Assembly: GCA_037447605.1 (NCBI GenBank) | Contig: CM074814.1 | Span: 806,001 to 870,000 of the forward strand | From: Zygnema circumcarinatum SAG 698-1b | Lineage: Eukaryota > Plantae > Zygnematophyceae | Reading direction: 5' to 3' | Length of the DNA stretch: 64,000 bases | Shown here: positions 2,959 to 49,904 of the stretch, one piece after another | Numbering within the stretch: the first letter of the stretch is position 1 | How the letters are laid out: every line of letters starts with the position of its first letter | Program-made: the position numbers and the translations under genes | The notes under the pieces: generated by a model | What the model was told of the DNA's origin: nothing | The model's database searches: none | Seen by the model: the letters and a program-made list of their open reading frames with translations, nothing else

Positions 2959-3893
2959 GGGTAGTGATATTTCCACCCCTTTTTTGGATCCAAACACCCC
3001 TTCCCGGCCGGGCAGATTTCAAAAAGGATTAAAAACGGCAAATGCTTTTTTCACACCTTTTTGGAATCGATACCCACCCTCCATCGGCAGATTTTTTTTT
3101 TGCGAAACAAGGAAATAACCCGTCACCCCATTTTGAATATCCCGCCTACCTGAATTTTTTTTCACGCGTGCGGTCAATCGTAGCCGTCGATTCCCTCGCA
3201 GATCGTAACACGGCAGATCACTATTTGCTCTGCAGGCGGGCTCGGTCACAGAGAATGGCAAGTGCCCACGTATCCCGTCAAACTTGTCTCAAAAGTTTGT
3301 CCGTACAAATGTCGTACGGACGCAACTTTGAGGAACCCAATATTTCGTATATTGAGAGCTTGGACCAATCAAAGTTTTCCACGTCAAAAGTTTAACACGT
3401 GGCAGATGTTGATTGGCTGAGAGCTGACAATGACACGAGATCTCGGGCCTAGGGACGCGCCTACTCGCACGTGCGATCCACTCGTGGGCGCTTTCCATTC
3501 GCTAAGATCGAGCCCGGCTGCAGATCGAACGGTGATCTGCAGTGGTGCGATCTGCGAGGGAAATCGACAGATGCGATTGACACACACGTGTGAAGGACGG
3601 ACACCCGCGTACGATCTCGTGGGGGACGGATCTTCCGCTCCGAGCGGATTCGGGCAGGCAGATATTTCTTTCCCTCAAAAAAAAATTTCAGGGAGGCGGG
3701 ATACAGTATTCCAAAATGCGGTGACGGGGTATCATTTTCCTTGGTTAGCAAATAAAATCAGCCGACGGAAGAAGGTGGGTATCGATTCCAAAAAGGTGTG
3801 AAAAGAGCATTTTCTGTTTTTAATCCCTTTTGAAATCTGCCCGGCCGGGAAGGGGTGTTTGGATCCAAAAAAGGGGTGGAAATATCACTACCC
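2959..3893. mobile_element. Non-autonomous foldback/MITE-like DNA element with long terminal inverted repeats, flanked by TA
   Basis: Left end GGGTAGTGATATTTCCACCCC... (2959) is the reverse complement of the right end ...GGGGTGGAAATATCACTACCC (3893). About the first 70 bp match exactly, and similarity continues for ~200 bp (2959-3160 vs 3680-3893) with further inner IR blocks. TA at 2957-2958 and 3894-3895. No coding capacity. Confidence 0.88.
3365..3416. promoter_or_regulatory. Palindromic double CCAAT-N9-CCACG module inside the foldback element
   Basis: CCAAT caaagtttt CCACG (3365-3383), 14-nt spacer, CGTGG cagatgttg ATTGG (3398-3416). Confidence 0.7.
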
Positions 3894-7660: not shown

Positions 7661-7714
7661 CCAATGGAGGCATGCCACGTGTAAATTTGCATACACGTGG
7701 TGCCTTTTCATTGG
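7661..7714. promoter_or_regulatory. Palindromic double CCAAT-N9-CCACG module in the divergent HDA14/PUR4 promoter
   Basis: CCAAT ggaggcatg CCACG (7661-7679), 16-nt spacer, CGTGG tgccttttc ATTGG (7696-7714). Lies between ATGs at 7237 (-) and 7991 (+). Confidence 0.75.
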
Positions 7715-7990: not shown

Positions 7991-23897
<15,907 letters not shown>

Positions 23898-28100: not shown

Positions 28101-30949
28101 TCACTTAATGATTATGTTCGAGGCAAGCTGAAAGGAAGGAATGAAATTTATCATTTCAACAGAGGGCAAACAGCAACTATGAGTCACACTACATGCTTCC
28201 TATCTCCTCTGCTTGTGTGCCATCATCATACAATACCCTACTACTCAGGGGATGCCGCTGAAGGACTGCCCAATGGAGATACATCAAAGGGCAAACCAAA
28301 GCAACTCACCAAGAGAGAGCTGAGGCAGCGAGGAGTGACGAGTCTCACCGAGAGAAGGAGCGTGTGAGCGTCACAAAAACACCTGCGGTGCCCCCCAGCA
28401 GCGGCCGCATGTCAAACTTGGGGCTGCGAGCGAGCGACCGCTCCACTGCCGATGTCAAAATCATCATCATCTGCATGACCCGCATCACCTTTGCTCCCCA
28501 TGTGACCCATGTACTGGGCTACCCCCCGGGCTCCTAAGTTTTACTCTAACACTCCTCGTCAGCTAGTAGCTCTGGGATGTATTTCAGAATCTACTAATGC
28601 AGTTAAGAAGAAGAGTTTCAAACGAAGCTAACGATGATGGGGAATGGGAGGTCAGCAAGACTGGCAAGGATCTGCACACTTCCTCGGTAGACTGAACTCT
28701 AGAAATGCCATTGAAGAGGAATAAACTCGCTAATGTTTTGCCGGCCACTTTATTTGAGAATAAAGTTATACACTGCTTGTCCCTGCGGACTGTCAGAAAC
28801 ATATTCTTAAACCAGTCCCCATCCATATTGCTAGATTAAGTTATATGGGGCACGCAGTTGACCAAACCCGTGCATTGCTTTCTATCTTGCAATATATTGT
28901 TTTCCCAATTTACCTGACCGTGGAGAAGGTCAAGTTGATCTCTTAACATGGAAGTTGGCTCTCCTGTAGCAGATATTGAAACAAGATAAAGTGGGCCCCT
29001 CACAAGGAAGAGAATCTGCATGCCCATAGCTGTAGAAATCCCATCAAAATGCATTCAAACATCACCTTTTGGGGTCACTACAAACCTAACTCATCCATAC
29101 ATTACCCTTTGTGGCTATAACCCTGGGAACAGGGAGGATGGTAACAACCGCTAATCAACATAGAGATACTCAAGTCACATTTGAAAAGGATCACTATGTC
29201 GTTTTGCTCCATTCATGAGAAAACAAACGACAATGATTTGATTTCCTTCAATGAGCCTTAACGCAGATGGACCACAAACGAGCACCACGTATGTCTTTAA
29301 TGAAAACCTCAGCTCATAAAGCATCTTGACTATGTATCACAAGAATTGAAACTTTTCTGAAACGGTACGCACCTGATGCTGGCCAGCTCGAATAAAGCGG
29401 ATCTTATCTCCTTCGTTCTCCACAAATGAGAGGATGGCTTGCAGTATTCCAGAAAATCCAGCAAGCTTCTGCTCGTCTCCATACCGAGAATAGATTGGCT
29501 TCCCTGCATTGCTCAATATGAAGAAGTGCTTTTTGTGCTTTCTCCATGATGGCATTGTGTCGTCCTTTATTGATCGTAGCACCAAAACAACCATCAACTG
29601 CAAGTAGTCAGCTTAATGAACACTAAGAAATATTTAACTCGCAAGACTTCGCCAAACCTCCGTAACTTTTTGTAAATGCTTGCCGCAATGCTATACAGTG
29701 CATACTCGGCGATATGAGAAAATTGTCACTATACAGAAACAATCTCCCTCCAAAATTTTAGTTCTGGAAATGCTGACACATTTGACTGGAAAAGGCATGA
29801 ATCACATTTCAGTGGTAAAGCGTACATGCTAAACGGGGAGTTAATTCAATGAGAACTAAGCGCCTCAATTGTCTTTTCGTCTTCCTCCCTCAACATTGCG
29901 ACTCAAACAATTCAGTCTCTTCTCATTAAACATAAGGCCACACCATACCCAATAGTGGGTCAGCAATCTAACGGATGCTGCTACAAAATCTCCTTCTCAA
30001 AAGTTCAACTAATGTTTAAACGACTTGAAGTAATCGTGATGTTTTCTTTAAAGGAATAAAACTCAATTTCAGGCTTTGGAGACCGGCTGTCTCATCCGAC
30101 TGATTTCGTGCTAAAATCAGCGGCTCCTATTCAACCACATGGAGTGTCTGTTTCCTTGAGTCTTGAACCTTACATCAAAGGAAGGGAGAGGTTTCAACTG
30201 TCCTCCAAATACAACAAGAGTTTCAAGAAGCGTATTGCTATCCCTTCAACAAGTTCAGCATCAAAAGTTGGAGACGGACTTCCGTTGTCACTTACAATTC
30301 ACTACATTTGTTCATTTTTGCGCTCGCTTGCACCTTGGAGATACATCATCACCGTATCTCTTACCTCATGCTTATACTTATTTTTGCTCGCTCGCGCTTC
30401 ATCCTCCATCTGAAGCTCCATTGAACCTGTTGAACTCTCCTCTTTATCCTTTCCTTTCCTCCTCCCATTCTCGTTCATTCCATCGTTTCTTTCGCTGCTC
30501 CCAGATTCTTCCTCTCCCTCCTCCCTCTCTTCTCCTCTCTGTCCTCCTGATGTTCCTTCACTCGTGTCGTCCCTCCCAATGCTGCCTCCCTCACTTATCT
30601 GATCAGAAAAACCTTCCTTCCTTCTTCCTTCATTCACTTCACTCACACCCTCCCTCTCCCTTGTCACAGGCTCTTCACCTTCTCCTGTTGCAATGCTGCT
30701 GTTACTACCGCTCCTCCTTTCTCCTGAAGCTTGCTCTGGTTTCTCGCTTGCACCATCTTTTTCAGGGAAATAACAGGGCTTTCCGACATGGCCATCCTCC
30801 TCAAAATCCAGATCGTCTGCAAGCGCCACAACAGGATCGAGCATGCCTGCTCTGTCGCCATAGCTGCTGTGCTCGCCGTTTTCTCGAGCTCCACGTGAGC
30901 CTCCCGTTCCTTTTTTCTCGCCCCTTCCTCCTGCTGGAGGTCCAGCCAT
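25172..30949 (-). CDS. MON1: Vacuolar fusion protein MON1/SAND (RAB7 GEF subunit), multi-exon
   Basis: Exons encode [65 protein letters not shown] and C-terminal [11 protein letters not shown]...PFTFSS* (TAG 25172-25174). Acidic N-terminal exon starts MAGPPAGG at 30949. Confidence 0.92.
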
Positions 30950-34102: not shown

Positions 34103-34155
34103 CCAATGAGGGTTTGCCATGTCAACACTACTACCACGTGGCAGTTACCGATTGG
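34103..34155. promoter_or_regulatory. Palindromic double CCAAT-N9-CCA(C/T)G module upstream of the orphan gene
   Basis: CCAAT gagggtttg CCATG (34103-34121), 15-nt spacer, CGTGG cagttaccg ATTGG (34137-34155). Confidence 0.7.
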
Positions 34156-34272: not shown

Positions 34273-34375
34273 CAGTTTGCCAGGAAAAACCGACTTTGCC
34301 AGGAAAAACCGAGTTTGCCAGGAAAATCCGAGTTTGCCAGGGAAAACCAAGTTTTCCAGGAAAAACCGAGTTTGT
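34273..34375. repeat. 19-bp minisatellite, ~5.5 tandem copies (consensus GAGTTTGCCAGGAAAAACC)
   Basis: Units start at 34273, 34292, 34311, 34330, 34349 and 34368 (partial); no spacers between them. Confidence 0.9.
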
Positions 34376-34886
34376 CTTGTAACCTTCTTTCAGGCGCGCG
34401 GCGGCTCTCGTCAGCGGTTTGCAGCTTTTTCAAGTGGGTTCACCGGCCGATATTCTGCGATGTATCGAAGATATCGCCAGTTCAGTGTGCGGTAGACGGC
34501 TGACGAAGGGGACACTTTGGAGTTCACAAAACTGAGCATATTCGGCTTTGACGTTTGTGCCAGACAGACTACAAAGGGACTATTGTTCGCAACTGCTTCC
34601 AAATGCCCACAAATTGCAGCATTTTAAGGAAGCAAATTTCACATTTGGGGAATAACTGCCTTGCTCCGCGCTGCCAGCTACAAAATACAAAAGCAAACAA
34701 AAGAGATAGTCTAATCTATTGAGCCCTCGTAACGTTTTGTGAGATGACCCCGTTTTTTAGTCAACATGCCAAAAGTAATTACAAAGAAAGCCAGTATTTG
34801 CAATTGAACATAATTACAAAAACAAAATGAGAGAGAGACCTTTCTCTCCTCTCCAGTGCTTCAAAACTTAAATCTCCGAAGCAACC

Positions 34887-36903
34887 TCAGCTGACCGACT
34901 GCCCCACTGCTGACTTGAGCTCTGTGGCTAACTCCGACGCAGGCTGCACTTTCCCATTCACCTTCACAGAGGTGACTTTCACCGCTTCCTTATCACTTCC
35001 CACAAGGAACAGCCCTTCGTCTGTAACTACCCCAGGCTCAGCCGCCCCTTCCACAGCCACCTCCACTCCCTTCAAGCCATTCTTATCATAAGTCTCAACA
35101 AGAACGGAGCCAAATAGCCCCACAACTTCCCCATTTATGATGGTCCAAGCACCGGGAAATCTGTCATTCCCTCTTATGAAGTTATGGATCTGCTCCGCCG
35201 TCTTCGTGAAGTCGACCTTTGCCAGCTTTGGGTCTTTCCACAAGGGGTCATATGAGGCTCCTTCCTCGGGCTGAGGGATGCGCGGCGCTTTACCGCTCGC
35301 GATAAGGTCTACAGCCTCCCCCATGGCCTTCACTCCCTCCGGGAAGAGGAACCTCTTGTCTGAACATAAGAAGCATAGGATCTTTAGTCGTAAGGTCGAC
35401 CAAACAAACTGAAACGTTCTCATTCCCTCGTTTCTAAAACTCTAAATTTCATTAAGCCTCTCTACTGAGTCTGAATTGAGGTACACAGCCACTTCAGCAA
35501 AGGGAAAGCACTTTCATACTCACAGATTGAGTTAACAGTATCATTTGGTTCCACGTCACACTCCTTTTGCAGCAGAATGGAGCCTGTGTCCAATCCGTCG
35601 TCGGCCCAAAAGACTGTCAACCCGCTCTTCTTGTCACCCTCCATGAGCGTCCAGTTGATGGCAGAAGCTCCCCTGTGGCGAGGCAGAAGAGAGGGATGGT
35701 AGATGATGGAGCCGTGCTTGCAGGCATCAGAGACCTGGCAGGAGAGGGAAGGAGGAGGGAGACTAGTGCAGGATGGGGTGCGAGATCCAAGGACCGGATG
35801 GGGACGACCAGAAGTCAAACGCTAAATGAAAACATGTGAATAATGTGAAAAATCCTTTCTTATCATGTCATGTTCATCCATTCTGCGTTCACGAGTATGG
35901 TTCAAGCATTGGCTGGAATTTGAACCAAACGATAAAATGTACTGTGAATTAATAGAAAAAACCATTACATGGCCACGCCGTGGGACCTTATTTTCCTGTT
36001 ACATGCCCCGATGCTGAAAAAGTGCCAGATTATGTCTAAACATGTGAGGAATGAAGTCAGAGCAGAAGCCATGTACCTCCATGGGAATGAATTGGGTGAC
36101 AAAGGCCAGCACATTCAGTTCCGCACCCACACTTTTGTACTGCTCCAATACCTCCGGTAGCACGTGGCCACCATCCTTCTTTAAAGCCTTCCATCGCACT
36201 ATTTTAAATACCTGAGCATAACAGAAGAAATGCAAAAAGAATTCAAAATAGTTTAATGAGCGACCTGGTTTTGATTTATGAGAACAATCATGACACTGCG
36301 TATGATCGGCTTAGATTCTCTTTCATGGCGACTCATTTAAAATGGAAATGCAGGAACACCCAAAGGGAAAGAAAAAGCGGGGAAGGGGGGGGGGGGGCGG
36401 GGGCAGATGAAAGAATCCATTGACAGGAGCCGAGCGAAGCTGGAAAGTGTGGAGATGGCAAGCGAGAGGGAGAGAGAAAAAAAAATGACGAAAGAAATGG
36501 TAATAAAAAGCAACAGCAAGGGAATTACAACAAATCATTAAAATACAATCTTACAGTAATAATCAAACTATAACAATGACCCAGACGGGGATGCTAACAA
36601 AGAATACTTTCCAAAATGACCCAAGAAATGAGCGTACTCAAACATAAAAGAGAGGAAAATCTAGAAAGCGCAATCCTCCCTTCCTCCCTCAACTCTCTGC
36701 CTCCTGCGTCTTTAACGCAAATGCTCCCTATTGCCTCCTCCTCTCACCTTGTGCCCGTTCGCACGTGCGGCTGCCGCCAGGGGGTCCTCCTTCCCCGCGC
36801 TGTCCGGCACGCTGAACACGCCCACAACCTCGTGGCCTCGCTCCAAGAGGTGGCGGTACACCTCCGCTCCAAACGCGGACTGCCCGAACACCGCCACACG
36901 CAT
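34887..36903 (-). CDS. Stand-alone 10-formyltetrahydrofolate hydrolase-like protein (ALDH1L/FDH N-terminal formyltransferase-fold domain), 4 exons, ~324 aa
   Basis: Exons 36903-36748, 36211-36077, 35734-35524, 35359-34887, all GT-AG and in frame. They give [72 protein letters not shown] and [11 protein letters not shown], nearly identical to the animal ALDH1L motifs as recalled. Ends in TGA with no ACP or ALDH domain. Confidence 0.9.
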
Positions 36904-37116: not shown

Positions 37117-37243
37117 CCAATCACAGAACGCCACGTCAGCATTTTCGCTTACATGGCAAACGGTAATTGGCCGTACGGGGACCCTCCGCCAATCATAAAA
37201 CGCCACGTCATCACTTTTTACATACGTGGCAGACGGTAATTGG
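37117..37243. promoter_or_regulatory. Two tandem palindromic double CCAAT-N9-CCACG modules upstream of the ALDH1L-like gene
   Basis: Module A 37117-37170 (CCAAT cacagaacg CCACG / CATGG caaacggta ATTGG); module B 37189-37243 (CCAAT cataaaacg CCACG / CGTGG cagacggta ATTGG). Confidence 0.75.
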
Positions 37244-49852: not shown

Positions 49853-49904
49853 CCAATGGAAATTGACCACGTGTATAAAATTACACGTGGCGCCTTGTGA
49901 TTGG
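49853..49904. promoter_or_regulatory. Palindromic double CCAAT-N9-CCACG module upstream of NOL6
   Basis: CCAAT ggaaattga CCACG (49853-49871), 14-nt spacer, CGTGG cgccttgtg ATTGG (49886-49904); ~95 bp upstream of the ATG. Confidence 0.75.

Follow-up and report, generated by a model that had tools for sequence, protein, structure and literature searches.

The window analysed here is a stretch of 64,000 nucleotides from the genome of the zygnematophycean alga Zygnema circumcarinatum SAG 698-1b (GCA_037447605.1, contig CM074814.1, positions 806,001 to 870,000 of the forward strand), and all coordinates given below count from its first letter. On its minus strand lies a four-exon gene whose predicted product corresponds to ALDH1L's N-terminal hydrolase domain. 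ALDH1L, a three-domain enzyme known chiefly from animals, removes one-carbon units from folate; Fmt, PurN and PurU are the formyl-folate enzymes described for land plants. As judged from its sequence, the locus is an intact gene under selection, predicted to encode a stand-alone enzyme of the clade formed by the ALDH1L N-terminal domain (Nt-FDH).

Exon structure and predicted product

The gene is divided by three introns (Table 1), and joining the exons from the sequence and its open reading frames (ORFs) yields a spliced coding sequence of 975 nt, encoding 324 aa and a TGA stop codon. The first exon, which ends in the donor AAG/GTGAGA, can be aligned with ALDH1L residues 1-52, and also with positions 189-328 of an orthologous mRNA contig, L004. 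The exon junctions are independently supported, since the protein runs unbroken across all of them when compared with solved ALDH1L structures and since L004, an intron-free contig of a related organism, is co-linear with precisely the four exon blocks. Exon joining and the GT-AG introns thus bear out the four-exon gene of about 324 aa ending in TGA that had been proposed in an earlier, sequence-only reading of this stretch.

The start ATG pairs with residue 1 of ALDH1L, which leaves the product without an N-terminal extension; no obvious transit peptide had been seen in the earlier reading. No C-terminal SKL-like signal is visible in the 324-aa product, and the protein is probably cytosolic. 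Seven sequencing runs of uncertain kind (RNA or DNA) contain 65-80% of the words of the gene, introns included.

Family assignment and active site

Exon 3 matches the zebrafish, rat and human Nt-FDH chains in the PDB with E values of 5e-37 to 3e-33, with 59 of 68 aligned residues (~87%) identical to the zebrafish domain, and exon 4 matches Nt-FDH residues 165-305 with E values of 2e-35 to 1e-31, whereas for Fmt, sugar formyltransferase, ArnA and PurN the best chains come to just 1e-8 to 1e-13. The whole product is 55-58% identical to the N domain of vertebrate ALDH1L and co-linear with it from residue 1 to ~310. Pfam searches of the exons have identified Formyl_trans_N in exon 3 (91.5 bits) and Formyl_trans_C in exon 4 (47.9 bits), and no other domain, PP-binding, ACT and ECH included. 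The same two subdomains make up the Nt-FDH of ALDH1L1 and ALDH1L2 (PDB 1s3i, rat; 2bw0, human; 4qpd, zebrafish; 7rlu, full length), with which the algal protein also shares the Ile-x-His-x-SLLP and LDTG motifs and the equivalent of Tyr200. Unlike those proteins, it has no carrier or aldehyde dehydrogenase (ALDH) part, ends 14 residues past the hydrolase domain and has a longer loop, KALKKDGG.

The key residues of the Nt-FDH hydrolase have been reported to be Ile104, His106, Ser108, the SLLP turn with cis-Pro111, Asp142 and Tyr200 (Lin et al., PMC4388273). All of their algal counterparts are kept, namely Ile108, His110, Ser112, Pro115, Asp146 and Tyr204, with Ile108 and His110 lying in the IIYHPSLLP motif and Asp146 in the DDGLDTG motif, both of which had been picked out from the letters alone.

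The TIGR model scores were taken on an 81% identical orthologue, P0193, in place of the window protein. This orthologue scores 128.4 on the Fmt model TIGR00460 (cutoff 201.5), 55 on the PurN model TIGR00639 (cutoff 150.1) and 30.1 on the PurU model TIGR00655 (cutoff 285.95), which places it outside all three of the families with which the sequence-only reading had proposed a comparison. Fmt, PurN and PurU have in common with the algal protein the Formyl_trans_N fold and the HxSLLPxxxG motif, but differ in carrying Asn before the catalytic His. An ordinary Fmt was rejected both on the score below the equivalog cutoff and on the presence of Ile where Fmt has Asn, two residues before the catalytic His. 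A PurU deformylase was rejected because the score is far below the cutoff and because the ACT domain of PurU is missing from every exon. PurN, the GAR transformylase, is a single-domain protein of ~200 aa, and was set aside on its score and on the additional Formyl_trans_C subdomain of the algal protein. HypX was likewise rejected, there being no ECH domain and the sequence relation being distant. On this comparison of sequences, the predicted product is an ALDH1L-type N domain, and neither an organellar Fmt nor a PurU-type deformylase.

Among the features that mark membership of ALDH1L, the hydrolase domain with its key residues and the placement in the N-domain clade are present, and the acyl carrier protein (ACP)-like 4'-phosphopantetheine domain and the C-terminal ALDH with its catalytic Cys are absent. 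With two defining domains absent, the protein is not a three-domain ALDH1L in the strict sense, and since it is without them the algal polypeptide is by itself incapable of the NADP-dependent conversion of 10-formyl-THF to CO2 and THF that likewise marks ALDH1L.

A short form conserved among related algae

The orthologue P0193 (317 aa) is represented by six intron-free contigs, 1.1-1.45 kb in length, which come from six runs belonging to a single accession series. These contigs have an in-frame stop upstream of the ATG and their own stop at the homologous site, followed by a 3' untranslated region (UTR) of ~300 nt that ends at an identical spot in several of them, and no ALDH sequence has been detected up to their ends. 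With regard to the earlier concern that transcripts might splice on to ALDH exons, these P0193 transcripts end soon after the homologous stop. A second transcriptome ORF, P0201 (330 aa, flagged 'ORF type: complete'), is 70% identical to the window protein. Two gene models of Spirogloea muscicola, P0325 and P0513 (SM000035S13117 and SM000304S11850), are also 70% identical and end likewise; they are the closest named relatives, and the stand-alone, intron-bearing ALDH1L hydrolase gene that had been proposed for the plant lineage is upheld with them as its nearest named counterparts. Taken from these gene models and transcript ORFs, the short form is conserved in related algae.

A comparison with P0193 gave a proportion of synonymous differences (pS) of 0.76, at which synonymous sites are saturated, a proportion of nonsynonymous differences (pN) of 0.12 and a nonsynonymous distance (dN) of 0.134. 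With saturation at synonymous sites alongside this pN, the algal gene is under strong purifying selection. Among the best 120 matches to P0193 (down to 259 bits), neither land plants nor chlorophytes are represented by a named protein, and an Atlas search returned generic bacterial formyltransferase clusters only.

Phylogenetic position and origin

The tree comprises 63 rows and was computed under LG+C20, with a set drawn from an exhaustive profile-free search with exon 4 and from two word searches, the first of which (with a mixed alignment) was dominated by a bacterial 309-aa family and the second of which used P0193. All eukaryotic ALDH1L-N sequences, including the window protein, form one clade (100/99), which stand-alone bacterial families adjoin. 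The named animals (rat to nematode) make up a single clade (100/95) with the window protein outside it; the group to which the latter belongs (86/97) also contains P0193, P0201, Spirogloea and a metagenomic sequence on a long branch. Contamination or a recent animal transfer is disfavoured by this position outside the metazoan clade, as is, where animals would be the donor, the horizontal acquisition that had earlier been entertained. A long-branched member of the streptophyte-like clade, P0340 (444 aa, contig L012), has LCYH instead of IIYH and a 130-aa Ala/Asp-rich C-terminal extension without a Pfam domain.

Three-domain genes are also found outside animals, with N, PP-binding and Aldedh domains on one strand in contigs L001/L002 and L010, and with all four Pfam domains in P0394, a 916-aa single ORF that falls outside the animal clade. 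Their N domains are 51% (P0209/L010), 55% (P0394) and 65% (P0096/L001) identical to the algal protein, with which they share a KALKK(D/N)GG loop and the same polytomy outside Metazoa; they differ from it in keeping the PP-binding and Aldedh domains. Further short forms comprise an amoebozoan transcript, P0007, and P0204, in whose contig a TGA is followed by 150 nt of non-coding sequence. The description of the gene as 'animal-type' is too narrow, the clade being pan-eukaryotic with fused forms outside animals, short forms in protists and sister forms in bacteria.

In the best tree all fused sequences fall in one group, with weak support (66/70). A tree constrained so that the streptophyte clade is sister of the fused non-animal pair loses only 4.1 log-likelihood units, with a p value of 0.11 in the approximately unbiased (AU) test. 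The tree is thus compatible both with a lineage that was never fused and with one that lost its carrier and ALDH domains secondarily. The KALKKDGG loop, which is four residues longer than in the Nt-FDH of ALDH1L1 and ALDH1L2, is common to the non-animal relatives, and the loop in this region may be ancestral. As a marker of the green lineage the insertion was rejected, because the loop is longer in an amoebozoan and of intermediate length in a sponge.

Genomic surroundings

The coordinates of the gene and of the other features of the window are collected in Table 1. The ACP and ALDH parts of two fused relatives (L001 and L010) were compared with the whole 64-kb window by tblastn, which gave nothing credible at E <= 10, and a repeat of the search with the carrier and ALDH parts at E <= 1e-3 found the N-domain exons alone. 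The statement that no ACP-like or ALDH exons follow the gene, originally made for its immediate downstream region, thus holds across the entire window.

Past the stop codon lie two TGTAA motifs, and the 3' UTR of the orthologue likewise has two of them close to its end. The pair, which we take to be of the green-algal poly(A) type, may represent a candidate polyadenylation signal. Upstream of the ATG is a cluster of CCAAT-N9-CCACG promoter modules, a pattern with 10 matches in the 64-kb window against 0.04 expected by chance, mostly occurring as inverted pairs. A tandem repeat lies downstream of the gene, beside a single module of this kind. The first coding candidate to follow the gene on its strand is an ATG-started, Ala/Ser/Gly-rich ORF that is without a Pfam match. 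Beyond it, two ORF pieces match the first longin domain of FUZ/MON1/HPS1 (PF19036, 53 and 27 bits) and probably represent exons of a MON1-like gene that shares this strand and lies ~5 kb on. The extreme GC and AT skew of the 20-22 kb bin is due to a (CT)n microsatellite.

Table 1. Features of the 64-kb window, with positions counted from its first nucleotide
Feature	Position	Strand	Details
Whole gene	34887-36903	-	4 exons, 3 introns, all GT-AG
Exon 1, aa 1-52	36748-36903	-	ATG at 36903-36901; start of Rossmann-type folate-binding half
Intron 1	36212-36747	-	536 nt, GT-AG, phase 0; missing from orthologue mRNA contigs L004-L009
Exon 2, aa 53-97	36077-36211	-	Holds KALKKDGG insertion (aa 60-67, 36167-36190)
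Intron 2	35735-36076	-	342 nt, GT-AG, phase 0
Exon 3, aa 98-168	35524-35734	-	Catalytic core: Ile108 (35702-35704), His110 (35696-35698), Ser112 (35690-35692), SLLP turn, Asp146 (35588-35590)
Intron 3	35360-35523	-	164 nt, GT-AG, phase 1
Exon 4, aa 169-324 and TGA (34887-34889)	34887-35359	-	Inter-domain helix, Tyr204 (35250-35252), Formyl_trans_C subdomain, then 14-aa tail
Two TGTAA motifs	34779-34818	-	71 and 106 nt past stop
CCAAT-N9-CCACG promoter modules	37117-37135, 37189-37207, 37225-37243	+, +, -	214-340 bp upstream of ATG
Single CCAAT-N9-CCACG module	34137-34155		730-750 bp downstream of stop
Other CCAAT-N9-CCACG sites	3365-3416, 7661-7714, 49853-49904		
19-bp tandem repeat	34274-34374		5.3 copies, 87% matches; intergenic
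ORF of 294 aa	32095-32979	-	Next same-strand coding candidate downstream
Two ORF pieces, MON1-like	28836-29603	-	Match to PF19036
(CT)n microsatellite	19588-21116		Near-perfect, ~765 copies, 1.5 kb, 98% matches

Bacterial sister families

The nearest bacterial proteins are stand-alone, 302-321 aa long and ~40-46% identical to the algal protein, and are usually annotated as methionyl-tRNA formyltransferase. A representative of one alphaproteobacterial family of 309 aa, P0299, matches Nt-FDH in the PDB with 216 bits as against 168 bits for Fmt, and fails the Fmt cutoff. This family resembles the algal protein in its stand-alone two-domain build, similar length and ~40% identity, and is sister of the eukaryotic clade. 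It differs in lying within an operon, with oxalyl-coenzyme A (CoA) decarboxylase (oxc; 1035 bits, cutoff 557) and formyl-CoA transferase (frc; 713 bits, cutoff 442) upstream and formate-tetrahydrofolate (THF) ligase (fhs) downstream, the latter often followed by formate dehydrogenase subunits; the algal gene is without such neighbours. The context was sampled in 80 species-representative genomes fetched through the family alignment. The gene has frc beside it in 70 of these genomes, oxc in 65 and fhs in 74, and all three are present in 59 of the 64 loci with enough flanking sequence, with median gaps of 125 and 167 bp. A limited literature search found no characterisation of the protein of this oxc-frc-X-fhs operon.

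In another sister clade (P0388; L021:6001-7779 and L022:2823-4601) a crotonase-family ECH_1 gene comes immediately after that of the formyltransferase, a domain pair like that of HypX. A split HypX was considered for this pair and then given less weight, as the ECH protein looks like an ordinary crotonase and its 60 best PDB hits do not include HypX; the likeness to HypX may be coincidental.

Possible roles in formyl transfer

Studies on ALDH1L have shown that its N domain passes the formyl group from 10-formyl-THF to the thiol of 4'-phosphopantetheine (PMC4388273; PMC8748788; PMC12041015), and that in vitro hydrolysis of 10-formyl-THF by the isolated Nt-FDH requires millimolar 2-mercaptoethanol, a stand-in for the 4'-phosphopantetheine thiol (PMC4388273). 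The N domain of HypX (PDB 6j1h) has been proposed to use the same His/Asp pair in moving the formyl group of 10-formyl-THF on to the thiol of CoA in free form (PMC6802093). HypX is otherwise unlike the algal protein, being distant in sequence (46 bits to the P0299 family), fused to a crotonase-like decarbonylase and provided with Asp in place of the triad Ser. It has also been reported that the plant enzyme consuming formyl-CoA is still unidentified (PMC9090294).

The reading that we favour, tentatively, is that the algal protein interconverts formyl-CoA and 10-formyl-THF by way of a free pantetheine thiol, that of CoA. The protein would bind 10-formyl-THF or THF, and the formyl group would move between the folate N10 and a thiol, as it does with the same domain in ALDH1L. 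Given that the protein has no carrier domain of its own, the partner would be the free pantetheine thiol of CoA. CoA appears to be the likeliest acceptor because the domain is thiol-dependent and without its own carrier, because HypX offers a precedent and because of the bacterial operon. This operon would fit either direction, since it makes and needs formyl-CoA and also encodes an enzyme that makes 10-formyl-THF. The favoured direction would be from formyl-CoA and THF to 10-formyl-THF and CoA, a preference that rests on rough textbook free energies by our own estimate. Formyl-CoA arising from oxalyl-CoA decarboxylase would in this way be salvaged into the folate pool, and if the thioester were hydrolysed instead, the net outcome would be the 'hydrolase' reaction.

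Several points weigh against formyl exchange with CoA. The proposed acceptor comes from relatives that are only ~40% identical, and these bacterial proteins have Gln at the position of Ile104 in the alga and ALDH1L, so that their acceptor chemistry may differ from that of the algal enzyme. The P0299-family proteins in the sampled loci are at least 79% identical to one another, and the operon context amounts to about one evolutionary observation rather than many independent ones. The other sister families give no CoA signal: the Chloroflexota type adjoins a PNPOx-like gene, and none comes from the P0388 clade. Land plants, moreover, also make formyl-CoA and yet appear to be without the gene, so that this would not be a general plant solution. 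A wider proposal, which we consider unlikely, is that the algal protein and its bacterial sisters are formyl-CoA:THF formyltransferases, which in the alga would supply the missing third step of a CoA-dependent oxalate breakdown, passing the carbon on to folate at no cost in ATP, and would represent the never-fused ancestor of the animal three-domain ALDH1L. A limited literature search found no description of a formyl-CoA:THF formyltransferase as a free-standing enzyme.

A plain cytosolic 10-formyl-THF hydrolase, in which water would be the final acceptor, formate and THF would be released and the job would be like that of PurU, is the chief alternative, though a somewhat unlikely one. The isolated N domain of ALDH1L does hydrolyse its substrate in vitro, and the full-length enzyme does so when its ALDH half is idle (PMC4388273; PMC12041015). 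The whole catalytic set is kept in the alga, including Ile104, whose replacement by the transferase-type Asn leaves less than 10% of the hydrolase activity (PMC4388273). On the other hand, water alone would be a poor acceptor, since hydrolysis by Nt-FDH needs millimolar 2-mercaptoethanol, a situation that the authors deemed unlikely in cells (PMC4388273). This same dependence on millimolar thiol makes doubtful the simple cytosolic hydrolase that the sequence-only reading had put forward, and any likeness to PurU itself is countered by the 30 bits of the orthologue against a 286-bit cutoff.

An ALDH1L split into separate polypeptides, in which formyl would pass to the 4'-phosphopantetheine of a separate carrier and then to a separate ALDH for NADP-dependent release of CO2 in trans, is improbable. 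The chemistry would be the same, and the contacts between Nt-FDH and carrier in ALDH1L have been described as transient (PMC8748788). The fused non-animal relatives also have the KALKKDGG loop, and a sister relation to them is not rejected (AU p 0.11). Neither an ACP nor an ALDH of ALDH1L type is present in the window, however, and a query with the ALDH domain of an algal-side ALDH1L found no named green-lineage protein among its best 120 matches, a weak negative from a collection that includes the Spirogloea proteome.

It is quite improbable that formyl is passed to some other small thiol or nucleophile, for example to glutathione, giving S-formylglutathione for cleavage by S-formylglutathione hydrolase, or to an amine. 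The domain takes the non-native 2-mercaptoethanol in vitro and the wider formyltransferase family has many acceptors, but the relatives that formylate amines carry Asn where the alga has Ile (PMC4388273), and gene context and phylogeny give nothing that points to glutathione.

Finally, it is highly improbable that the gene is a non-working one, whether a contaminant, a recent transfer from animals or the decaying remnant of a truncated ALDH1L: the 55-58% identity to vertebrate ALDH1L and the absence of the 324-aa product from both word searches that would have covered it (neither being an exact look-up) are countered by its position outside Metazoa (100/95) and beside Spirogloea and two transcript-derived sequences (86/97), by three spliceosomal introns, the promoter module of the genome's own and a MON1-like gene ~5 kb on, and by strong purifying selection on an intact active site.

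Implications for folate and oxalate metabolism

The short form already exists in databases as unnamed entries, namely the Spirogloea models and the transcript ORFs, and a limited literature search brought up no publication on an algal ALDH1L-type N domain that stands on its own. In those algae that are closest to land plants, the first module of ALDH1L occurs as a separate, conserved gene, and the full three-domain enzyme is also found outside animals. This raises the idea that the module, before its fusion, may have served to move formyl between folate and a pantetheine thiol. The gene is a candidate for a step in the catabolism of oxalate by plants and algae for which the enzyme has yet to be identified (PMC9090294). 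Should it prove to be merely a thiol-dependent hydrolase, it would still give the green lineage a second way to formate, one that does not run through PurU.

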